A stretch of 62,769 bases of DNA, the filler included, from Choristocarpus tenellus KU-1152 (lineage: Eukaryota; Protista; Phaeophyceae): NCBI GenBank assembly GCA_964200185.2. It is 9 parts of 9 records of this genome, joined end to end, with 100 filler letters (N's around TTAATTAATTAA, not from the genome) between each part and the next. Parts side by side here need not be neighbours in the genome. Positions count along the whole stretch, not along the records: positions 20,326 to 35,944 come from CAXNAD020000959.1; 8 more parts are not named here. One strand, given 5' to 3'. Under the pieces are notes generated by a model. The model did no database searches. It was given only the letters and a program-made list of their open reading frames with translations, and was not told the DNA's origin. Every line of letters begins with the position of its first letter. Within the stretch, counting starts at the first letter, position 1. The position numbers were made by a program, and so were the translations under genes. Shown here in pieces: positions 20,326-35,944 of the stretch.

Positions 20326-20408
20326 TAATGTAAAATCACTTTTCCCGATTTTGGTCCAAAATAGACACCCTGGTTTAGACCCCACCCCCCTCCCAGATAC
20401 TTTGTGTC
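20326..20408. mobile_element. MITE family B, partial (contig start)
   Basis: ...ggtccaaaatagacaccctggtttagacccc...ccagatactttgtgtc. Confidence 0.8.
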
Positions 20409-22774
20409 TGGATTCGGTGTTAGAGGCAGAACTAGAGGATTATTATCTGCAGAGATCAATTGTTGCACAACCCACTGGTCCGTTACCTGGAAATCTGTGC
20501 CGAGGAAGATTCCTGACGATTTTTAGAGAATTTCCTCCCATCCTCTATACGAAAAACTCATTGAAGGAATGAGGGTCTTCGTCACGAAATGGTGGTAAAA
20601 GGTGTTCAGTTCGCTTGTTTTCCTTGAATTCCTCCTCCATGAAGATTCAAGAATGGTTCTCAGTGGAGTGGAAATTGGGGTTTTGTCTCCTTGATCGACC
20701 ATATGCCAACTGGAATGATGCGGCACATGTACACAGGGCAGGTATATGGTGTTCAAAGAATGGGCAACGTGTTTCAGCACACTCCAAACAGCTTACCTCC
20801 ACAGGATGTATAGCTCCAATCCACAGGCCTATAGATGGTGCTGATGCTCGTACAAACCTCCCAGGATACTACGGCACAGTCAAAAGGTTCAACGAGGATA
20901 ATGAATATCAGGTCAGCAGATAAAGTGCACCTTCTGAATCAATAGCCACTTAGATAAAAAATATGGTGTCAGTCAAAATCAGAAAGTGAGGTATGGGGTC
21001 ACTGTTTTGCATCATCCACCGTTTCCTTTATACTTTAGCTTACAGACGTCAAAATACATCTGCAAACCGTTGCATACATTCCCAACTTATAGTAAATCGG
21101 AGTTCCCCCTTAAGGGGTTCCCTACGCGTGCATGCTGCTCGCGCTTATTAGAGCGCGGGAAGAAATACTTGTACTATTTGCCTGTAACAAATGTACTAAA
21201 GTATTCTCCCACTTCAGAACTGCTGCATGGTCGTCGCCACCGTGAAACAGGTGGAAACCGACAGACAGATGTTTCAGACTGAAGGGAAGGGGAAAGACCA
21301 ACAGGAGGAACACAAGGGAGATAGACAGGGCAGGAGGCTCAGCAACCTTAAGCAATGTCACTAAAGAAACGAGTGAACAAGGAAAGTAAGTGAGAGGGGT
21401 TTGTAAACTATGTTCAACAACCCATATTGACGTCATCACCAAGCAATCTTGATGTCGTGTCTTCTACATGGAACCCTTGGTACCACACAGGTTGAACTGT
21501 AATATGAATTTGGTACGTCTTCTTCAAGTCAGAAGAGTGCCCAAAGCCACTTCGATCTTGTTTTGTGCAACAAAATAAAGAAATGATTCTAGTGAATAAC
21601 AGAGGACAAAATGTTGTTCAAGGCAGAGAAGTGAAATGTGATAACAACAGTGCTCAACCAAGAAGATGGAGTCCTTGCGTTTTACCATCCTGTCCAAGTG
21701 ACTCCAACATGATAATATCAAGAATGTGACTTCATTATCTTTTTTTGGTGTGCCTGTTAACCCCAGGTGATACAAGCCTGAATGAAGCAAAGCTTCAAAC
21801 GGAGAAAAAGACAGGCTCTCTCTTCAACTAAAATAATCATATGAAAAGGATGGGCAAATCGAACAATCTTTAATCTTCCACGACTTCTCCACATAAGGGG
21901 GCATTTTTCTTGAACACAACTTCAATAATTTCTCAAAACCAACTCTACACCTTTCATCCCTCTGTGGTGTGGCAAGAATGTTGAAATCGAAGGATGAGGG
22001 AAACAGAAGTGAATATCAATAGTTTGTTCTTGAAGTATCAAGCAATGACAACAAAATTGTGTTTAATTAGACCATGTCCTCATAACAGTCGTAAGGCCAA
22101 GCTCATCACACATATATCCACACGAAGTAAGGTCAAGGGATATTATTCATTAGTTTGATCTTCTCAAACCTGTTAACAGAGGATGTAAACTAGACAAGAA
22201 AAATATAAGAGCAGTGTGGTAGAATATATCGAAGAGGAAATCTGGCAGGGACCGGACCTAGTAATAATGAAGGTTCAATGATGTGTATCTACTTGTTCTA
22301 GGAAAATGCCACGGCAGCACCCAGGTCCAATTCCCAGAAAAAAACTGGGTTCTAAGTATCCCCCATCAACTATTTAGAATACAAGTGTAAACGACAACAA
22401 TAAACAATAAAATGAGTAAGTCGTAAGCACCCACATTTCTATATAATGATAACACACTCTACCACCAATATTATTAATGTGTGCTCATAACAATTTTTGT
22501 GTTACACTGATCTCCCAACAACATGAACGTATTTCACCACTCCGAACACAAAAAACACACTCGGACGCCCACCTTCCAAAGGAAGGACCCTTTGAAGGTA
22601 TACCTTGGCGGGGAGGTGATTGTCACTTTCATAACCTTGTTCATGTGACATATTATTTACTCGTTTGATCGTTATTCACAGTGTGCAGACCCATACTTTA
22701 TCACTGTCACGTACAGTTCCCTCTTCGGGGTGATTTTCGATCATTGACGTCCAGGAATCACTCGGAGCACAAGG

Positions 22775-25700
22775 ATGAAAAAGTGGGAATCGATCATAGC
22801 CATGATCTGTTGCTCTGCCCTATCAGTCGATTGTGCAGGTTTGGGAGGAAGCGTAGCTGGTCTGGTTCTTGGAGTTTTTCTTGGCCGGTTTTCTCGGCAC
22901 AGTGACAAAGTAGAACCAAGTACTACGGCGAATGTGAAGCATTCGACTCAGGTGGGCTTTTATGAGGTCCTTGAAATTCGAAGAACCTCCCCAAGTTGAT
23001 GGATTCATTTTTTGGTCTTCTGAATGTTGTGTGTTTGGATGCGGTTGCGTGAGGTGTCAACAGGACTGCAGTCAGGTCAAGCAATAGGACTATTCTGTGG
23101 CGTTTGCTTTTTGCAGCACTATGATATCGCCTGTCCTTTGAACTAGCTATCCGCTTAAGCAAGTGTCTTCATGCGGACTCATCATCCAGGATCAACACCT
23201 ATTTCAGTCTGAGGGTTGGGAGGAGAGAAGGTCATACGCAGACTGGGAACCATTCCGGGAGCTGGGGAAAGACATGATCGATTACATCGTGAACTACTAT
23301 AAGGGAGTTGAGGCCCGCCCCGTGCGCGCCCAGGTGCAACCTGGGTACTTGAAGGTCAGATTGAACGTGTTCTGGTCTTTCTTTCTCTGCATGTCGATGT
23401 TTTACTCTCGTTCAAATTGCGTATCTCTATAACTCACATTTTTCCAACTGCACCGTGCAGACTCTACTACCGTCGAACAAGATCAGTGCCGTGGGGGAGA
23501 GGTGGAGTGACATTATGGTCGACGTGGAAACGAAGATCATGCCTGGGATGACACACTGGCAACACCCTCGGTTCTTTGCCTACTTTCCGGCAAACTCCTC
23601 ACCACCAGCTATCCTTGGCGAACTGGTAGCTAGTATGTTCAATGTGATTGGCTTCTCATGGGAAGCCAGTCCGGCAGCGACCGAGCTGGAGACGATTGTC
23701 ATGGGTGAGACGGAAATATTTGACAACGAAACCTTCCCTTAACTCCTCAGCTTGCAGGGGCAATGGCCTTGTGTTTCTCCTCTCTCATTACCCTTTCTGA
23801 TCGTTCCTAGATGGGATCTAGCACCAATTCTTTTATTTTTTCTCCACGTTATAAGGCTAGTATTGTGGTCAACACGTAATACTCCAGTCAAAACTTCCCA
23901 CCAATAATAGCTTGCTATCTATTATTGAGTCCAGTTACTGTGCCTCTCCTCTTTTCAACTCATTCACAACCCTATAGTACTTGACACCACGTTTTTACTT
24001 GAGTGGTTAGAGATTCCCCACAGGTTTACCCCACCCCTTCATTTACTTTTTGAATGAACCGTTGTTCAGACCTCCTTGCCAGAGAAATGGGGCTCCCATC
24101 ATATTTCCTGTCTGAAGGAGGGGGTGGAGGGGTTATTCAGGGCTCAGCCAGTGAGGCTACATTGGTAGCCATGCTGGCTGCCCGGACTCGAGCCCTGAAG
24201 CGCCTCCGTCAAGAAAGTCCAGACGCCAGTGATCAGGAGATTTTTGGCAGGATGACTGTGTATGCCTCAGATCAGGTTGGTAAAATATTTGGTGTGCCAA
24301 GTACTGAAAGAGGTCGGTATGTGCCAGGAGGTATTCATATTTGGGGGGGGTCATCGAGTGTAGTAAATGTCACTGTACAATAAGAAACAGTTTGAAAAAC
24401 TTGAGCATACCACAAGGTGTTTTTTTGCTTGCTGCCTGTGTCATCAAACAACTCCCTCTATTCTAGTGTTGATGTAGCAGCCCCAATCATGTCTTTTTTG
24501 GCCGCAAGGTAGTGGAGGGAAGCTACCTACACTGATACCACAGCATCCCCTTGTCTCAAAACCTCAGCTTTCATTTCCTCAATTTTCCTTGCCAACCCTC
24601 TTATCCACACACTATACCAACCCTTTGATCCATACCTTTGTTCATGGTGGACAATGCAATCCTCTTCTGTCATTGTGATCAGGCCCATTCATCAGTAAAG
24701 AAGGCAGCCCTCATTGCAGGTATCCAGTTTAGAACAGTGCCAACTTCAGCAATGAAAAACTTTGCCATGAGCTCAGCTGAACTGGAGCTAGCCATGGCAG
24801 AGGATCGTTCAAAAGGGTTCACACCAATTTTTGTGTGCTTCAATGTAGGATCTACGAACACCTGTGCGGTAGATCCTGTTCGGGCTCTGAGTGAAACATG
24901 TCGCAGGTGTGTGCTGAAGATGGAACGAAGGATTGGACTGCCTGTTGCCTATATTTATATTTTTCAAGGGTTATACTCCGTCAAGGGGCCAACAACCATG
25001 GTGGAAAGAAGCAACAACAGTTTTCCAAAAATAAATTGCTTAGTGCTAGGTGTGTGTTTCCTCTTTATTTCTGCGTTGTTGCTATAGTTGGTTGTAATGT
25101 TCCTTGCTCCTATTTGGTTCCTCAGTGTCATCTACAAAAAACTACTTGGATTAGAACTATCTCAAGAAAAACCCTGAGCCTAGAAGTTTATTGTTCTATT
25201 TTGTTACATAACAAGTACAACTTAACTGCTTGGATTGATTAAGTTTTTGACTGTGCTGTGTTTGGTGTCACTGCAGGCCCATGCTTCCTGCAGCAAGTGG
25301 GCAGAGCAAGGAAGCAAGCTTACACTGGTACAGTCACCTGTCCAACTCCCTTCACCACCTGCATCTCGTGCCATTCTCCCCACCTGTATGCATGCTACTT
25401 TCTGGAGCATAGCTGTGAACACAGGGGCTGTGAAACCATGGTGCCATGGCTGCACGTGGATGCTGCTTATGCTGGTGCTGCTGCCATCTGCCCAGAGAAC
25501 AGATGGATTCTGGATGGACTGGAGTTTATTGATAGCTTCAACTTTAACTTGCACAAGTGGTGAGCCACATGTAAGCACAGTTGAAGATTTTCATGTATAT
25601 ACTGCAAGGCGATCTGTATTCTCCAGTAACACAGTGTGGCTAATGTAAGCAGGATGGCTGGCAATTGCCGCATCAAATCAGGATGGTGAAAATGTAGTGT

Positions 25701-27545
25701 GGAGTGTGTGAACTTTGTTCTTCTGACTCAAAAGCCTTGTGCTGCAGGTTCCACTTATTGAGGCATAGTTCCTGACTTTTCCTTTCCCAACAATTCAGTA
25801 ATCTATTTTTACCCTTGGCATGATTGCCTTAGTGACTACACACCAGGCATATCCACTGCCCCACTTCTCATCCTGGCATGTTGATAACCCACTGGAACAA
25901 TGAGACAGGCTCCTGGTAAATTTTGACTGCTCTGGGATGTGGGTGAAAAATCGATCTTTCCTTGTGGATGCCCTGTCTGTGACACAGTCCATACTAAGCA
26001 CCAAGGAACACGAGCAGGGGCTGGTGATTGACTATAGGAACTGGCAGGTGATATTACCCTGTACATGTGTTTTTGCACTTCTTGTTATAGGACTTCACAA
26101 ACTTGTCCCCTCTACAAGATTGTTTTCTATTGATGAGATGTTGACTTCCCTTTGTGGTCTATCCTTATTCTTACATATCTAAAACACATGCATGGACAAT
26201 AATCCTGCACAGATCCCTCTTGGGCGAAAATTTCGCTCCCTCAAAATCTGGTTCACCCTTCGTGCCTTTGGATTGGAGAAGATCCAAGGGCATATTAGAC
26301 GCCACATTGCACTTGCCCTTGAATTGGAGACCCTCATCCGGATGGATAACAGGTAGTGAGGACACTAACCTTTATGGACTGGTTTTGGCAGCAGAGTTGC
26401 ATTATCATCATCATTGCAATAAACTTTCAGTCAGCAGAACAGTTCCTACAAACTGTTTCCCCTTGAGGAGTACCACTGTTGTATTGTAGACATTTCAGGG
26501 ACCTTTAAACTGTAATGATATTTTGCTAACTGCAGTAGTCACCCTCCCTGGATTGCTGTTAACAATCGTGCCAATGATCATGTGCAGGTTTGAGGTTGTG
26601 ACACCTACAGTATTTGGGCTTGTATGTTTCCGGCTCAGGGCTTCTGATTCTGCCAATCTCAAACTTAGGTGGGTGGTGGTATGGGGCATAATGCAAAGAA
26701 TGGGGAAGCAATACTCAGTATTCATCCTCTTAAGTATAATATCACTAAGTGTGTAGATTCTATTTTGGATATCTACACCTTAATTCGTGTACTATATGGT
26801 AGTGTACATTTCAATAATAATTTGAGTATATTGCATTTTTTGGAGTTTATTCAACTTCTACTCATAGTTGATTCAAAATTTGATTAACAACAAATGGTGC
26901 ATTTTAGAGCGATATGCAGGGCATATCTTTTTATTTGTTACTAGAATCCATTCCCCAGTAGGCTCCAGTAGGTGCAATGACCCAGAGTAAATGGTATTCT
27001 GACTCCTGGGATGCGAGTTATCTTGCCAAAGCTAATTTTAAAATATTTCATGGGCCTGCCTTGCAGCACTGTTGACATACTGGCAATTGTAAATTCCTGG
27101 TATAACATACCTGATCAAATGTTGGATTAAACCCTCACTAAATTAGAAGCAACGATGAGATACTGAAAACGTAAATATTAAGGCATCAAGATAGGATTGG
27201 CCAATGCTTGTCTTCTCATCCTGACCTATCCTCTTGTTTACCCCATTCCTTCCCTCCCAACATTTCAGGTCAGTTATTGTTGACTCTGGCCTAGCATATT
27301 TTGTGTCTACCACAATAGGAAGTCGTACTGTCCTGAGGATAGCTATTGGCTCGCCTGCTACAGAAAGGAAACATGTAATGGAGTTATGGCATGCATTGCA
27401 AGCAGCTGCTGGAAATGTGATAGAAGGGGATGAAGAGTGGGAAAGACATTTAGAAAGTGGAAGGGGAAAATATGGGGCACAAGATGCTGAGTTTCAGCAT
27501 GAGGACCAAAGCATACCAACAAGCATGGAGGAGGATACGACATAG
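22775..27545 (+). CDS. DDC: PLP-dependent group II aromatic-L-amino-acid decarboxylase family protein (DDC/TDC/TyDC/AAS); exons 22775-22951, 23208-23354, 23461-23704, 24070-24275, 24683-24906, 25413-25559, 25909-26047, 26213-26352, 26588-26668, 27269-27545
   Basis: [62 protein letters not shown]-lysine [32 protein letters not shown]. All introns are GT-AG and in phase. The first exon is the least certain. Confidence 0.95.
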
Positions 27546-28764
27546 GGGACACCAAAATAAGTTCCATTATATAGCACTCAACAAGAAACAGCTGATTTGT
27601 ACTCTGACTAGTTGCCTCCAGAGAATTCAGTACTTCAGGGTATCACATCTTGATTTGCACTTTTTTTTTTTCACCTTTCATATTGCATAGAGTACAACTC
27701 TATTAGAAAGTCAGAACTCATCTGCAATCAAGCTCTTCTTGCTTAAACCCCTGGACAACATACAGCGGAAGTGGCATTTCTATGTGTTGAGAGTAAAACT
27801 GATCTACTGTCTGAGAAAATCTATGAAGTTTTGCTCTACCCAGGACATAGTTTCAGGGGAGGACTAATTCCATGAATGCATCTGTTGAGTGGAGACAAGC
27901 AAAAAATATTTTTCTTTGCTCGTGAACTCGGGGTCCATGAATCAGCATTGTCTTTGGCTTCCATCCACTCTCCTCCTTCTCAACCAATGCAACCCCACTT
28001 CTTCCTTCCCTCCAACCACTATCCTTGTTACCCCACAAACTTGTGACCAATTCTGCATATCCAATGACCAACCAGTGCGACCAATCTTCGCCATTTGTTC
28101 CAGTCACCAACTAATGCGACCATTTTTCGCGAATCCACTCCACAATGCCCCACATTCACACAAGAACACCCCCCAATCATCCACTTCAATGCTGTGCCTT
28201 TGAACTATTAAGAAATCTACTCCAACTGAACTTTACGTCCACCCCCCACCCCAACATTCTGCTCAATCATGAGCAATCAAGAGGGTGGGAGGGTGGGACA
28301 GATTGCACTGAGGTTGCCTTGATCGTGCCCCTTCTGTCCTCCCACTCCGTTCTTGACTTTTACATTGTATTCTGCCCTGCCCCAGTCCTTCCTACCTTGC
28401 CTTTCCACTTACCCCTCGTTTCCCTTTAACTTCTTGATCACATGATCTGCCCCCCAGCCATCGCGTCTTCTCGTTTATCCTCCTATTCTCTTCTTTCCTT
28501 GCCAATACTCACCATACTGTACGTATTTCCCCTATTCGAGTTCTCCCGCCCACGAAACTCAGATTTCTTCAAAGGTTTCCCATTGTAGTATTCTCTCTGC
28601 ACAAGTGGTTTACATACAAAAACACTTTAAAGTGCATGAGGAACTTTAATGAAAGATTGACCAGATTATCCGTTGACACGTGCTGATTATTTCAGATTAC
28701 ATGAAGAGGTTCAAAAGAAATCCTCTTTCTTCACCCTCACATTTCAAGGCAACATCTAAAACAC

Positions 28765-29487
28765 TCAACCGAAGGACCACATTGCATTAAGTAGAGCTAT
28801 GCTCCCTACGCAGCTCTCTATGATATCCATGCTACTTGTATCTAGGGTACTACTCCATGAAAACGCGGGGTTGGTCAAGATAAGCCCTACGTACAACATG
28901 AGGCCGAAACGGCAGACGACTGCGTTCGCTCCCACCCACACTTCCGTCTCAATAGACAACTCTGTCCCCTCCAAAATTTGTGCGGGAAATCTCCGAGACT
29001 GACCATATTTCCCCTCCTGCTCCTGAATTTGCCCCATGGCATGATCGGCCAATTTCTGATGTAATGATGTTGTCGGACCCGTGAATATGAGACGCAATGT
29101 TGCCACGATTCTCTCTACCTGGTGGACCAAGCGGTCATAGCAGACCATGTAGTCGGAACTGTCGTACCCTATCGCACCAGTTTCAGGATTTAGTCGACAG
29201 GTATTCAGGATTTCGGCAAGTCGACCTGGAGTCACCAACACTGCGACAGACGCTGGGGTGGATGGTGGAAGTCTGACCCCCAACACAACTCTCACGGCAT
29301 CCCGCCAGCCTTTACTCACAAGCGAACACTCATATCCTGTTATACGGACAGCTACATTATCCTTGGGATGCTCAAGGAAATGAGGGAGGTAGTCCACAAT
29401 AACTGCCATTACATCATGACCCAATAGGTACGAGGCAGAAACTGCTTTATCAAGGGCAGGTTCGGATGGAGGAGTTGGGACTGTCAT
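28765..29487 (-). CDS. Intronless protein with N-terminal F-box-like motif and unknown C-terminal domain
   Basis: 291-codon open frame containing LLGHDVMAVIVDYLP...CSLVSKGWRDAV (F-box pattern LPxEILxxIFxYL...xxxVCKxW). Likely ATG at 29487. Confidence 0.6.
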   Translation of the reverse strand: MTVPTPPSEPALDKAVSASYLLGHDVMAVIVDYLPHFLEHPKDNVAVRITGYECSLVSKGWRDAVRVVLGVRLPPSTPASVAVLVTPGRLAEILNTCRLNPETGAIGYDSSDYMVCYDRLVHQVERIVATLRLIFTGPTTSLHQKLADHAMGQIQEQEGKYGQSRRFPAQILEGTELSIETEVWVGANAVVCRFGLMLYVGLILTNPAFSWSSTLDTSSMDIIESCVGSIALLNAMWSFG

Positions 29488-30292
29488 TCTGCAGCGACAC
29501 TTCCATGAAATAGGACAAAGGGATCGACAGAGAGAGAGCCGGAGGTCAGGTACAAGGCATGAAGCGCACGACGAACAGCGAGTTGCGGGAAAAATCGAAC
29601 TCATATTTATTTGCCCAACATTCGAACAAAATTTCCTCATCAGTCTATGCGCTTACCTACCCACCTGCAAGGTGGAAAAGCTTGCAATGGACTGTTGGGA
29701 TACTTCTTCATGTAGAACGGGGCATCTCACAGGGGGAGGGCGGCCAGCAACTTGTATATGGTGTCACCCTCTCACACAAGATGAACCGAGATTTTGATCA
29801 TGTTTCATCACATCGCGCGTCTCTCGCACTTTCCTACAACAAGTATACCAATTTCGAGCCGCGCGAGCTACTTCGAAGAAGTAGGTACTATTTTAGTTAT
29901 AACCGTTCAAACTTGGAAAAAATATGGATATAATATATTAAACCTTAATCATGAAGTCTACGGTATCGGAAGGGTCGAATTGAACGTGACTTCTCATTCA
30001 CCCATACAACCTCCTAAGTAAATGGAACTATTTGTTAAAATGTAGTAAGTTGAGGTGTCTGGGTCTCCTCTGTTAGCCGAGTCAGAACGTTTTTCTGTTG
30101 TGGTGTGAAGATTAGGTAGGAAGTTTAAGTCGCAAGCAAGGTAGGTGTATGAGTTGGAGAGTGGTGTGAATCTACCTACATGACCCCACCCACATCGTGA
30201 ATATGTAAGATTGCGTTGGGAAAGTCAATGCCTGTTGTGGAGAAAAGTTTGGGGTCTGAGGTAGATTGGAAGAAGTTTATGGTCATGAAGGT

Positions 30293-30551
30293 GAGTGAAA
30301 GTATCTTAGAGGGTACGAGTTTTGCCCTGTTTGTCCATTTGAGGCTTGGCTTCCCAAGGTTTTTTTTATGACGTCTTCCTACTCCAAAATGTTTCAGAGT
30401 AGGTAAAATGTATACCTTATGAAAAGGTGTGACCACAACATGGATATTGACACTTCCTAACAAACACTATGACCAAAATTACATCAAAATTGCAACATTG
30501 AATTTTGACCCCCAAATGGACGCGGCTGTACCCTCTAAGATAATTTGGCTC
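30293..30551. mobile_element. MITE family A, full length (259 bp), 4-bp TSD AGGT
   Basis: TIRs gagtgaaagtatcttagagggtac / gtaccctctaagataatttggctc, with AGGT on both flanks. Confidence 0.92.
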
Positions 30552-30595
30552 AGGTGTTTCTGCACTGACTGGGGTTGGGGTTGACTGGAAGAGCA

Positions 30596-31131
30596 TCACT
30601 ACAGTTTCAAATTTGATGCCCTTCCTGGTATTTATTACCATTAGAACCGTGTCCACACCACCTGTCAATAGTGGTATCACGAACATTTTCAAATTCGGTG
30701 CCCTGTATCTATCAGCATTATTAGAACCGTGTACATACTAGTTGTCAATAGTCTTCACACCAACATTTTCAAAACCGATACCCCTGTATCACCATCAGAA
30801 CCGTGTACACACCAGCTGTCATTAGTGGTATCACCAACATTTTCAAATCCGATGCCCCTCCCTGTATTTTGTAACATTAGAACCATGTACACACCAGCTG
30901 TCAAGAACGGTATCACCAACATTTTCAAACTCGATGCCTTGTATTTGTTACCATTAGAACCGTGCACACATCACCAGCTGTCAATAGTGGTCACAGCAAC
31001 AGTTTTAAATCCGATGCCCCTGTATCTATCACCATTAAAAACTTGTACACACCACCCGCCAATGGTGGTATCAACAACATTTTGAAATGCAATGCCCCTG
31101 TATCTATCACCATTAGAATCGTGCACACACA
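30596..31131. repeat. Minisatellite, ~78-bp unit, about 7 diverged copies
   Basis: Consensus CCATTAGAACCGTGTACACACCAGCTGTCAATAGTGGTATCACCAACATTTTCAAATCCGATGCCCCTGTATCTATCA. Confidence 0.9.
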
Positions 31132-31304
31132 TTGTGTACATTTCAACAAAGAGAATGGAGAAAGTTCGTTTGTTTGATGACACTCACGGCTTCAACATAA
31201 AAAAATTATGCTACATTCTGATATTCTTCCACTACTACCTGCACAGACACAAGCTCACAACATACCTCAGCCTTACACCACAACAACTGAGATTACAGTA
31301 TGCC

Positions 31305-34300
31305 TCAACCCCCTTGTACAACACGACCCGGCAAGCGCTTGTTAAGTTTGAGATAAGTATGAAAGATATCACCCATACAAGAGGAAGCTGTTGCCCCCTC
31401 ACCCACTCCAGCCATTGGATCAGAAGGAGGTAATCCATTTTCTGTATGAATTGGCGGAAGCAATGTACGGTGGGCCGTACTATTAAAACGTGATTCAACC
31501 GACAGCATCATGCTATGCGTTGCCCCTGCCATGTGATCCACTCTTTGTACTTCTCCATAGCAGCGAGTACCCACTCCATTTGGCTTGACACATCCTCGGG
31601 TAGGAGCATCAATAGCATACAGGGTGTGGATATGTTCCTCTCCATATGCACCAAGGCCTAGAAAATCACTACCAAATGTCTCTGACTCCTCTGGGTCATT
31701 CATGCTATATGCTATTTTGTCTGAATGAGCGTCCAGGGGAGATGGAAGAAGATGCCCTAGGAATGGGCCAAGTTGCACCTCCATTGGCACGGAGAATTTA
31801 CTTGATCCCAGCGAATTTGCAGCATTCACCCTGCACCAATATAGTTGAAAGGGTGACAATCAATGAAATATAAATATTTTGGAAATAGTACGGCACTTCA
31901 GCCATTGCTGCTACGATCATTCTATTCTGTTTAGTGGATGTAATTGCCTGAACAATCCTACCATGAACTACTCCTAGAGCTCTAGTTTTGCACTCAGTAA
32001 TATTTAGAACCAGACAGAATTGACACCACCCTTCACGACCAAGCTTCAGTGGACAAGCACAAGCATGTTTCATGAATAAAAAAAGTATGTTCAGTGTAGC
32101 ACCTGTAGCCAATGGTGAGCTGTTCTCTGGCCACCTTTTGCAGTATATCCACCGCTATTGTGCTCAGTGGTGCGTCCACAGCTTCACACACCTTATGAGA
32201 TCCGTTGGGGAAACGCTCCCAGCGTTCACTGCCAACTTTCCTCTCCACACAGTAACTGGATCCCACGCAATTGACAGAGAGAGCTAGCATGTTAGAGAAG
32301 CTGATGTTTACCAAGTCTTCTGTATATAAATGACTCGATTAATTCCCTTACTGGATTGGATATGTTGTAGATGAAGAAGGAATGAGAAAGGAGGAGTGAA
32401 TCTTCAAGCTCAAAGGGGGGGGGGGGGTCCTTGCCACCAAATTAATCCTATTCTATGGATCACCAATCACGAATCACAGACTACTTGCTAGAATGCTACT
32501 AAATCATGATGTCTTCTATATTCCAGTTCATTAACCCATGCCTATCTTCTATTCTCCAGCATACGAACCTGTTCTCCTTTCCATGAACTGATTGTTTCTT
32601 ACATAATCTACTTTTACATAAGAATAAAAAGTATGTTCTTGACGAGGAAGGTTGAACTGGCCGAGTGTGAGCAAGAATTAGCAAGGGTTGGCCTCCAGCA
32701 TCAAACCCCAGACCCAAAGCATTTAAGAGGGTAGGAGTTGTGACCTGTTTGTCCATTTGGGGCTTGGCTTCCCATGGGTTTGTTTTTCCCTTTTTCGGTT
32801 TTCTGTTTGAACACAATTACCTACTCCGGAACATTTTAGAGTATGACTATGAAGATGTGTACGGAGCAAGGATATTGACACTTGCTAACAAACAAAATAG
32901 CCAAAACTACATCAAAGTCGCAACATTGGATTTATAACCCCGAATGGACCTGGTCCTACCCTCTTAAATTCTTTGTCTCCTAGTCTAAGGAGGATATCCA
33001 GGGATGAATGCTCAATGAACTACACCTTTACCACACTGGACAATAAGAGGCACAAGAGAAGATTTTCCCCTCATCGTGCAATATGTTCTGGGATCTTGTG
33101 TATGCTATAGAATTTCTTGCTTCCAATCAGGCAAGCATTTCAATTGCTGATATTAGACACAATCAAAGACCTCACCCCTGAATAGTGAGCCCATTACTCT
33201 TTGGCAGGGACCATCGCAGTGAAATGATGGGTTCCGGGCGACCAGGAACACTAGTGTTTGTAGCGACATTGTAACCCATACCTACCAGTATATGGGGAGG
33301 GCGGATTAGTGTGCAACAGTGGCAGTTACTAGTGTATAGGTGGTCGAAGGTTTTTTCTGATATAATGAGAGGAGTAGGACCAGTTCAGGGAATATTAATG
33401 CAAAATGATAAGTAGGGGGGTACCACGAGAGTGAAATATTACAAACAATCGTGGGTGAGGCTGTGGTACACCCTTTAGGTGTCCTGGTTCAGACTCGACA
33501 TGCTGTTTGGGTGGTATAGTTTGGCTGCTTTAATTAGATTGGTTCAAGGAAAAAATCAATTGGATATTGGTGCTTCAAATGCCCAGTAAATTTCCTGTAC
33601 TGTATTGTGGTGATAATCAAGATGAACACTCTACTGCAAGCAAAGATTTCTGTCCGTGAGGGTTTTCCTGTTGGTGTGTGCTTTTCAAGGTGCACCATGT
33701 GCCAACAAAAGCCGCTATCGAGCCATGACCCACTCGTGATTTGTGTTGTGCACCTCAGAAGCACAAATATTTGAGTTTGTTCTGGAGCAGTAAGGTTCAT
33801 GAGTGAAAGTATCTTAGAGGGTACGAGTTTTGCCCTGTTCGTCCATTTGGGGCTTGGCTTCCGATGTTTTTTTAAATAATATTTTCCTACTCCAAAATGT
33901 TTCGGAGTAGGTAAAATGTATTTGTTGTGAGAAGGTGTGTCCGGAACAAGGATATTGACACTTCCTAACAAACATAATAGCAAAAACTACATGAAAAATC
34001 ATAACATTGAATTTTGGCCCCCAAATGGACGCGGCCCTACCCTCTAAGATGATTTGACTCTCATGTCAGTTCTTTTAGAGTAGTAACCAAACGGATTTTA
34101 CCACCATCCTATTTACCTGCAAGGGATGGATATGGAGATTGCCACTGACGCAAGCTCAAGACTTGTCCGGGATCAAATTGGTTTACTGCAGATGCGGAAA
34201 CTAACACCTGTGGTAGTAGTAGGGCATTGAGAGAGTTTCAAGACTTGAATCCCTTTTGGATCTTCTTTGAAATGCTCTGTAGGGGGCTGTTGGCGAAGCA

Positions 34301-34730
34301 ACAAGTTATCTTGAAGGTGTGGACAAACAACAATGTTTGGAAAAAGCGAGGGTATATTATTGAAATGATGTAGTGCTGTAATCAAAGGATGCTCTGAAGC
34401 ACTATGCACTATCCAAAAAATGGTTTTACTTGATCTTCGGTGTATGTTAATTTGTTTTACCCTTGAGGAACTATTCCTACACACCTTGCAGCTGAGCTGC
34501 GGGACTTCTGGTACGTCTGGCTTGGTTAGAATAGTCGATTGAGCGCGCCCTGTGAACACACCATTGATGCTTTCAATGTTTTGCAAGGCCTCTAGCGAGC
34601 GAACAGCATCTTCCATTCCATTTGTCCTACCCACAATTTCAGAGTCATCAATGCAGAAGGAGATGAGGGTAGAGTTTTTATCATGTTTGTAGCTGCTAGG
34701 GCCAAGTTTTAGCTGTTTCAAACATCTCAA
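31305..34730 (-). CDS. Multi-exon fibronectin type III domain protein (3' portion; exon structure only partly resolved, possibly degenerate)
   Basis: TKPDVPEVP (~34520), exon ~33250-33176 IISLRWSLPKSNGLTIQG (LxWxxPxxNGxxI), and last exon LSPFQLYWCRVNAANSLGSSKFS (LxPxxxYxxRVxAxNxxGxS). Confidence 0.65.
32711..32979. mobile_element. MITE family A variant (A'), intronic
   Basis: gacccaaagcatttaagagggtag ... ctaccctcttaaattctttgtctc, with the internal motifs of family A. Confidence 0.85.
33801..34060. mobile_element. MITE family A, full length (260 bp), 4-bp TSD TCAT
   Basis: TIRs gagtgaaagtatcttagagggta / taccctctaagatgatttgactc, with TCAT on both sides. Confidence 0.92.
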
Positions 34731-35048
34731 AGCTTACTTTCTGGTGTTATGAACCAATACACGCATCAATCAACTTCAGTTCAATGAACTGAGAATACTG
34801 TTAGTAGTTACACCATAAAGGTGTTCCAAAGGAAGTTATTGAAATGCAGCAGAAAGCAAGGAATTACGTTTGGAACTTTCAGGCGAAACAGTATATTCTA
34901 GAAGAAAAGATTCTAGATCTCTAGGAACCATTTCGAGTCATGAAGGAGCTCGAGAGGTTAGGGGTAAAGGTATCGAAATACCAGATTTTAGCATCAATAT
35001 CATTAATGGGCTATCCATGGAGTACAAGATGGAAACAAGAATGCTGCA

Positions 35049-35944
35049 GAGTCAAAGCATTTAAGAAGGAGGGAGTTTCACCCAGTTGGTCTGTTCGGGG
35101 CTTGGCTTCCCACGGAGATTTTATTCCCTTTTTCGTTTTTCTGTGTGAACACATTTACCTAAAATGTCTATAACTACAAAAGGTGTGTCTGGATCAAGGA
35201 TATGGACACTTGCTAAAAAACACGATAACCAAAATTCATCAAATCACAACATTGGATTTATGACCCCAAACAGACCTGGCCCTACCCTCTTAACTGTTTT
35301 GGGTATGGACAACAATGCATTACTTTCATGTGTGACGATTGACAGAGTGATTGCACAGTAATACGAGTGACATAAGAGTGAAAGTATCTTAGAGGGTATG
35401 AGTTTTGCCCTGTTTTTCCATTTGCGACTTGACTTTCCATGGATTCTTTTATTACATTTTCCTCCTCCAAAATATTTTGGAGTGGGGAAAGTGTATATGT
35501 TATGAAATGGTGTGTCCAGAACAGAGCCAATTTATCTTAGAGGGTAGAGCTGTGTCCATTTGGGGCCCAAAATTCAATGTTGCGATTTCGATGTAAATTT
35601 GGCTATCGTGTTTGTTAGGAAGTATCAATATCCTTGTTCCGGACACACCTTTTAATAACGTATACATTTTACCTACTCGGAAATATTTTGGAGTAGGAAA
35701 ATGTCATAAGAACCCTGAGGGAAGTCAAGCCCCAAATGGACAAACAGGGCAAGATTCAAAGTTTCTGGGGGGAGGGTGGCGGCTTTCCATTTGGGGAAAA
35801 ATTTTCATGTCGCGATTTTTGGGTGATTTGGTTCCATACGTTGGATGGATAATGAAATTGCACTTTTCCTGGTTTTGGTCCAGATGGACACTCTGGTGGA
35901 GACCTCCCCCCCCCCCCTGATACTTTGGGTCCAAAACTCGTACC
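35049..35944. mobile_element. MITE cluster: A' (35049-35305), A (35376-35523) interrupted by an inverted A (35524-35944), itself interrupted by B (35753-35931, TSD CAA)
   Basis: Termini and internal motifs match the isolated copies. Removing B and one CAA restores acagggcaaaactcgtacc. Confidence 0.88.

Follow-up and report, generated by a model that had tools for sequence, protein, structure and literature searches.

We describe a decarboxylase gene of the brown alga Choristocarpus tenellus in which the catalytic-loop tyrosine of aromatic amino acid decarboxylases (AADCs) is replaced by isoleucine, and which is predicted to encode an aromatic aldehyde synthase (AAS). The gene is the one + strand decarboxylase gene, with 11 exons, of a 15,619-base contig that occupies positions 20326-35944 of the window (the whole stretch of 62,769 nucleotides analysed here). 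The Tyr-to-Ile change is clade-wide, under constraint and naturally reversed in one lineage, all of which is well supported by sequence comparison; its biochemical meaning is a prediction that we weigh below against the alternatives.

Isoleucine replaces the catalytic-loop tyrosine

The codon at 25991-25993 (+), in exon 8 (25909-26047), is ATA and encodes Ile. In a phmmer search the 46 residues of 25910-26047 aligned over their full length, with no gap, to human DDC 305-350 (3rbf, E 4.8e-9), with the Ile opposite DDC Tyr332 and flanked by two strongly conserved anchors, one of them DYRxWQ. This gapless alignment confirmed the original prediction, which had placed Ile at Tyr332. The loop Tyr is the hallmark of canonical, amine-forming AADCs (Tyr332 in DDC, Tyr348 in CrTDC and Tyr350 in PsTyDC), and here it is Ile. 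Neither is the protein of a known AAS type: the hydroxyl is lost as in plant-type AAS, but the residue is Ile and not the plant Phe, and the His192 that insect and Myrtaceae-type AAS replace with Asn is kept within DQAHSS, as it is in all brown-algal members. Among 225 full-length homologues from outside the brown-algal clade, the site was Tyr in 184, Phe in 41 and aliphatic in none, which takes the presence of Ile beyond chance.

Ile or Val was also seen at the Tyr332 position of four metagenomic or Logan homologues (P0027, P0048, P0052 and P0101) that are seemingly unrelated AADCs, and aliphatic replacement of this Tyr seems, from such sequences, to have arisen on more than one occasion across AADC homologues. 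Rose PAAS is said to carry Val at the loop site, which would set a precedent for an aliphatic residue; no weight is placed on it here. Text searches of the literature turned up no publication dealing with an AADC or aldehyde synthase of brown algae, or with Ile at the loop site.

The remaining catalytic residues were found intact. His192, which stacks on the ring of PLP (pyridoxal 5'-phosphate), lies in the DQAHSS motif (CAC, 24686-24688, aligned to DDC 189-194), and Asp271, the partner of the pyridine nitrogen, in HVDAAY (GAT, 25459-25461, aligned to DDC 265-274). The PLP lysine that forms the Schiff base, Lys303, closes exon 7 (AAG, 25555-25557) and is matched with Lys303 of pig DDC 1js3. 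All 11 exons are open and have GT-AG borders, and together they amount to 617 codons plus a stop. The claim that these three residues are present in an undisrupted frame was thus borne out by both the alignments to DDC and the exon structure. Six translations of open reading frames (ORFs) bearing exons 4-9 matched positions 10-358 of the PF00282 (Pyridoxal_deC) profile colinearly (E 3e-21 to 9e-6), and the full-length brown-algal orthologues carry PF00282 too; an NCBIfam scan returned only sub-threshold prokaryotic decarboxylase models. Judged by its sequence, the gene product is a group II PLP-dependent aromatic amino acid decarboxylase homologue of the AADC/TyDC/HDC branch. Exon placement was guided by homology and exons were searched singly, while full-length comparisons were made through the orthologues and the deposited Choristocarpus model P0156 ('unnamed protein product [Choristocarpus tenellus]'), which is ~100% identical to the exons of the window.

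Isoleucine is a constrained character of brown algae

The loop exon was searched with phmmer over 1.84 billion representatives, which yielded many fragments reading ...ALSVTPEILRSKEY..., and full-length searches yielded 14 brown-algal proteins (one each from Choristocarpus, Discosporangium, Ascophyllum, Laminaria, Pylaiella and Cladosiphon, two from Undaria, and three each from Ectocarpus and Nemacystus). Searching with a profile of the clade alignment added no members to the clade. The short loop-bearing "proteins" of the databases (P0003, P0004, P0007, P0008 and others) stem from reading through exons in genomic DNA and are not transcripts. Ile occupies the loop site in 11 of the 14 proteins; two from Nemacystus have Tyr, and one could not be read, as the Discosporangium contig stops before the loop exon. 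The original prediction had treated the site as a feature of a single gene: the Ile is indeed there, but it marks the brown-algal clade as a whole. It spans four orders, namely Discosporangiales (Choristocarpus), Fucales (Ascophyllum), Laminariales (Laminaria and Undaria) and Ectocarpales (Ectocarpus, Pylaiella, Cladosiphon and Nemacystus), the first of which is the order that branches first within brown algae.

Genomic DNA encodes the residue by three different codons: ATA in Choristocarpus, ATT in Laminaria and Pylaiella, and ATC in Ectocarpus and Ascophyllum. In all five the loop exon has 46 codons and the same limits. In Ascophyllum nodosum (L004, 7206-81309) ~74 kb separate the loop exon from the one after it, which reflects a giant intron or else faulty scaffolding. 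The ratio of nonsynonymous to synonymous substitution rates (dN/dS), summed exon by exon, was 0.07-0.11 among Laminaria, Ectocarpus, Pylaiella and Ascophyllum. In comparisons with Choristocarpus synonymous sites were saturated (proportion of synonymous differences, pS, 0.82-0.87), with a proportion of nonsynonymous differences (pN) of 0.23. These values indicate that the gene is under purifying selection.

The substitution has a phenylalanine-bearing sister and a natural reversal

We placed the brown-algal proteins in a tree of 31 rows (IQ-TREE, LG+G4; support given as ultrafast bootstrap/Shimodaira-Hasegawa approximate likelihood-ratio test), and a prior quick tree under a mixture model had the same outcome. 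The brown-algal proteins are monophyletic (100/100), their internal order follows the species tree, and the clade falls outside that of plant AAS. An animal origin was considered, as the best solved-structure matches of the loop exon are to mammalian DDC, and was rejected, as the identity of the contig and the tree put the gene in brown algae.

Sister to the brown algae, with support of 100/99, is P0158. This gene has no introns, adjoins kinesin and MRG genes on a eukaryotic contig of a JGI metagenome (locus L006) and has Phe, the residue typical of aldehyde synthases, at the loop site. The next-closest relatives have Tyr. Because the sister has Phe, the simplest history is likely to have been a Tyr-to-Phe change predating brown algae, followed by Phe-to-Ile on their stem, at a cost of one nucleotide change each.

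The two Tyr-bearing proteins of Nemacystus decipiens are encoded by tandem genes, g1983 and g1984 (P0151 and P0152), and are sister to the Ile-type g1917 of the same species (96/91), deep within Ectocarpales. Since both nest so deep inside the Ile clade, their Tyr is, on the tree, a secondary reversal, two nucleotide changes away from the Ile codon. This reversal was not solitary. Compared with the 225 outside homologues, the brown-algal clade has about 14 positions of its own. It differs at residues whose conservation elsewhere exceeds 85%, with Gln for Trp121, Asn for Thr242, Ser for Thr245, Phe for Tyr346, Lys for Arg356 and a few more such changes, and g1983 and g1984 are also back to the canonical Thr at 242 (from Asn) and at 245 (from Ser). 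Three of the ~14 clade-specific positions thus reverted jointly on one short branch, two of them adjoining Thr246 in the PLP pocket, which argues that residues 242, 245 and 332 act together and is the pattern expected if the type of reaction had been switched in concert. The Phe-bearing sister and the Ile-to-Tyr reversal likewise argue for the loop site being a functional switch. The two genes also carry Leu in place of Trp349 and Ser in place of Pro352, and their models are truncated at the C-terminus.

Substrate pocket and N-terminal extension

The aromatic pocket, like Lys303, His192 and Asp271, is strictly conserved among brown-algal orthologues. All the pocket residues of CrTDC (Trp92, Phe100/101, Pro102, Phe124 and His318) have equivalents in the Choristocarpus protein (W, YF, P, F and H), and exact spacing gives these as Trp, Tyr-Phe-Pro-Ala, Ile/Phe, His and Leu-Gly. 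Exon 6 holds an NVGST motif, with Asn and Ser where Thr242 and Thr245 are usual. The Gly of IPLGRKF (26222-26224) belongs to a Leu-Gly pair at the positions of CrTDC Thr369/Gly370, a correspondence obtained from their spacing (+21/+22 from the loop residue, which is Tyr348 in CrTDC). This Gly, which the original prediction had read as a pocket signature, is present, but it is the common state family-wide; it is compatible with indolic or unsubstituted rings and is a weak guide to the substrate. The Ala of the FPA motif was tried as a mark of unhydroxylated substrates and discarded, since the Tyr-specific Rhodiola 4HPAAS has the same Ala. As far as these residues tell, the substrate could be Phe, Trp or Tyr.

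A Ser in the PLS motif is a signature of phenolic substrates. Undaria pinnatifida has two Ile-type paralogues, P0026 (HiC_scaffold_2.g01072) and P0157 (g01074), two gene numbers apart on the same scaffold. P0026 reads PLS, with Ser for the Gly of PLG, and has a divergent loop (KQDILYSKQH); the fragments P0032, P0057 and P0141 are of the same subtype. The Laminaria protein has PLG, and the P0157 model diverges upstream of the motif.

All full-length brown-algal members, and P0158, start with an extension of ~60-90 residues that DDC does not have. It holds a hydrophobic stretch (...ALAGLVVGVVAGRFS...) of one or two segments, followed by basic residues. The 19-residue Kyte-Doolittle mean of this stretch is 1.6-2.05, with a maximum of 1.82 in Choristocarpus, so that the extension resembles a membrane or signal anchor. 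To our knowledge, no such membrane anchor occurs in plant or animal AADCs. As for the rest of the protein, its family membership points to a fold type I PLP-enzyme structure; an AlphaFold2 model of the Ectocarpus orthologue, built on an alignment of only 11 sequences, had a mean pLDDT (predicted local distance difference test) of 48.9, too low for the geometry of the loop.

Predicted chemistry and alternatives

The loop Tyr of DDC and of plant AADCs protonates the carbanion left once CO2 has departed. In DDC, Tyr332 is held to protonate C-alpha, and the Y332F mutant makes no amine: it consumes O2 and gives aldehyde and ammonia or, without O2, converts PLP to pyridoxamine 5'-phosphate (PMP) (PMC7497351). 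PsTyDC Y350F gives only aldehyde-derived tyrosol, and the Tyr-to-Phe change is both necessary and sufficient to make PsTyDC a 4-hydroxyphenylacetaldehyde (4HPAA) synthase, His-to-Asn being a second plant route to aldehyde synthesis (bioRxiv 10.1101/404970). Because Ile, too, lacks a proton donor, we hold it somewhat probable, by analogy with these mutants, that the brown-algal Ile enzymes perform decarboxylation-dependent oxidative deamination, that is, AAS chemistry. The enzyme would bind PLP and decarboxylate an aromatic L-amino acid as before; a loop devoid of Tyr would be unable to protonate the quinonoid at C-alpha, and the quinonoid would react with O2 to release an arylacetaldehyde, NH3 and H2O2. 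The enzyme would do so while anchored to the membrane through its conserved N-terminal hydrophobic segment, and Ile would be a third natural way to AAS chemistry, beside Tyr-to-Phe (plants) and His-to-Asn (insects and Myrtaceae). Of the original proposal of an independently evolved aldehyde synthase, what stands is a gene that is intact, constrained and separate from plant AAS in the tree; the aldehyde chemistry itself is the most economical prediction that analogy offers.

Several points weigh against aldehyde synthesis. The loop-mutant literature consulted contains no assayed Ile variant, and only Tyr-to-Phe and His-to-Asn are backed by experiment there. Phe may contribute packing or O2 access beyond the loss of the hydroxyl, which Ile may not mimic. 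At low O2, Y332F DDC turns PLP into PMP and stalls, so turnover by an Ile enzyme may likewise be slow or end abortively, and the Tyr or His found five residues past the Ile is a conceivable proton donor. Finally, the PLP lysine is absent from the deposited model P0156, and no transcript was found that decides which splice form of exons 7 and 8 is expressed.

This last point concerns a single junction. P0156 takes 25475-25904 as an intron, which cuts exon 7 at 25474 and loses 29 residues including the PLP lysine (NLHKW), so that the model reads HVDAAYA-DR-LLVNF. An alternative intron at 25560-25908 (donor GTGAGC) retains the lysine segment. The segment left out shares 77% identity with the exon of Discosporangium, and its equivalent is kept in the deposited models of other orthologues. 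For these reasons the exon 7/8 junction of P0156 is probably an annotation or prediction error, though it could represent an alternative isoform.

The alternative that survives best, while unlikely, is an ordinary amine-forming decarboxylase in which C-alpha receives its proton from another group, for instance Lys303, His192, a water molecule or the +5 Tyr or His. His192 is kept, some authors give it the protonating role with Tyr assisting (PMC7497351), and most members have Tyr or His at +5 of the Ile. However, amine formation is lost in Y332F DDC and Y350F PsTyDC despite an intact His192. The +5 Tyr is not compensatory, as it is present in the Tyr-bearing outgroups P0268 and P0275, and the position is His in Choristocarpus and Undaria_a. 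If amines were already the product of Ile enzymes, there would have been no point in the Nemacystus paralogues regaining Tyr at the cost of two nucleotide changes.

We rate as more unlikely still a crippled or non-enzymatic protein, serving as a PLP-binding regulator or undergoing abortive decarboxylation-dependent transamination to PMP. Such a fate would fit the missing general acid, the anaerobic conversion of PLP to PMP by Y332F DDC (PMC7497351), the changes at further residues that scarcely vary elsewhere (Gln at 121, Lys at 356, Asn at 242 and Ser at 245) and a deposited model devoid of the lysine. It sits badly with a dN/dS of ~0.1, with the strict conservation of the catalytic residues and aromatic pocket across brown algae, and with the lysine segment that P0156 skips being conserved in Discosporangium and present in orthologue models.

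A further step down in likelihood is an aldehyde synthase or decarboxylase acting on a non-aromatic amino acid (e.g. Met or Leu, by analogy with the SDC-like acetaldehyde synthases of legumes) or on another amino acid. The residues that set the substrate give no confident reading, several changes specific to the clade are adjacent to the pocket, and SDC-like enzymes bearing the Phe signature act on hydrophobic amino acids (PMC4177580). Against it, the aromatic pocket of CrTDC has its full set of equivalents in Choristocarpus, and the nearest sequences are AADC, TyDC and AAS, not SDC, HDC or GAD.

An assembly or sequencing error in the Ile codon, or a decaying pseudogene, would have only the odd residue and the faulty deposited model in its favour and is effectively excluded by the occurrence of Ile in 11 brown-algal proteins, its encoding as ATT or ATC in four other assemblies (Laminaria, Ectocarpus, Ascophyllum and Pylaiella) in addition to ATA here, 11 out of 11 exons open with GT-AG borders, and purifying selection across species (dN/dS ~0.1).

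Gene structure and surroundings

The gene begins with a short exon 1 (21355-21385, +) that supplies the start codon and MSLKKRVNKE, corresponding to P0156 residues 1-10, and ends in a GTAAGT donor. Exon 2 (22755-22933, +; AG/GT bounded) encodes the N-terminal extension, with the hydrophobic segment at ~22784-22885 followed by RFSRHS. The N-terminal domain of the decarboxylase begins in exon 3 (23190-23366, +), located by tblastn with P0156 and DDC-like proteins. Exon 4 (23461-23704, +) carries substrate-pocket residues (PF00282 E 3.3e-21; top PDB matches 6eeq and 6jrl) and is followed by exon 5 (24070-24275, +; PF00282 E 1.2e-15; GT-AG). Exon 6 (24683-24910, +), with His192 and the NVGST motif, aligned to DDC 186-246, and exon 7 (25408-25559, +), with Asp271 and Lys303, to pig DDC 265-303, its GTGAGC donor starting at 25560. 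Downstream of the loop-bearing exon 8 (+, gapless to DDC 305-350), exon 9 (26213-26352, +) encodes IPLGRKF (PF00282 E 9.2e-11) and exon 10 (26588-26668, +; GT-AG), found by tblastn to orthologues, the C-terminal small domain. Exon 11 (27269-27545, +) ends in the stop codon and is 100% identical to P0156 residues 499-590; in the orthologue alignment its acidic C-terminal tail is found in Choristocarpus only.

Pfam searches of the other long ORFs of the piece at 20326-35944 gave no match. The longest of them outside the decarboxylase gene, at 28765-29640 (-), has 291 residues. The region downstream of the gene, 30290-35750, is filled by a dispersed repeat of ~200-260 nt (64-88% identity), present six times or more and on either strand, that looks like a short interspersed nuclear element (SINE) or a miniature inverted-repeat transposable element (MITE). 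Within 30600-31130 there are irregular ~78-nt tandem repeats (62-81% identity), with repetitive ORFs on both strands. Elsewhere in the family, P0269 (861 aa, from a Logan assembly) is an aromatic amino acid hydroxylase (PF00351) fused to a decarboxylase (PF00282).

Implications

Brown-algal genomes contain homologues for the indole-3-acetic acid (IAA) pathway apart from tryptophan aminotransferase (bioRxiv 10.1101/2024.02.19.579948). If the predicted chemistry is right, phenylacetaldehyde, 4-hydroxyphenylacetaldehyde or indole-3-acetaldehyde would be made in one step, bypassing the missing aminotransferase, and the gene would be a concrete candidate for the origin of arylacetic acid auxins in brown algae. 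The specific route through indole-3-acetaldehyde to auxin, raised in the original prediction, is speculative, as nothing points to Trp in particular. The rule by which Tyr or Phe tells a decarboxylase from an aldehyde synthase would be widened to aliphatic residues, altering AADC-like annotation beyond plants. Release of H2O2 and a reactive aldehyde at the membrane could have a bearing on cell-wall cross-linking and haloperoxidase chemistry, which is speculation. The Ile-to-Tyr reversal of Nemacystus offers a natural comparison pair.

Taken jointly, these elements would describe a brown-algal type of AADC that became a membrane-anchored AAS via Tyr to (Phe to) Ile, as a third independent solution, feeding the phenylacetic acid, 4-hydroxyphenylacetic acid and IAA that brown algae are reported to contain, with a Gly/Ser split between kelp paralogues and a decarboxylase re-evolved in Nemacystus by three reversions. 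We offer this composite tentatively, and it is doubtful that all of its parts hold at once.

Comparison with known systems

Plant AAS (AtPAAS, 6eei; Rhodiola 4HPAAS, 6eeq; petunia PAAS) resemble the brown-algal gene in having PF00282 and in having lost the loop Tyr while keeping Lys, His and Asp; the top PDB match of exon 4 is the plant 6eeq, and the predicted chemistry would be that of plant AAS. They differ in having Phe at the loop, whereas the brown-algal protein has Ile, a separate origin, an N-terminal extension and changes of its own (at 121, 242, 245 and 356). P0158 shares both the N-terminal hydrophobic extension and the loss of Tyr with brown algae, yet has Phe at the loop site and His302 changed to Ser. 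Mammalian DDC is 42-47% identical overall, with a gapless loop exon, and its Y332F mutant serves as the experimental model for the loss of Tyr; the native enzyme, in contrast, has Tyr, makes amines, and is a soluble protein of ~480 residues without an N-terminal anchor. Insect DHPAA synthase (6jrl, among the top PDB matches) and Eucalyptus PAAS belong to the same family and have the same outcome as predicted here (aldehyde, NH3 and H2O2), but by the opposite substitution: they keep the loop Tyr and change His192 to Asn, while the brown-algal protein does the reverse.

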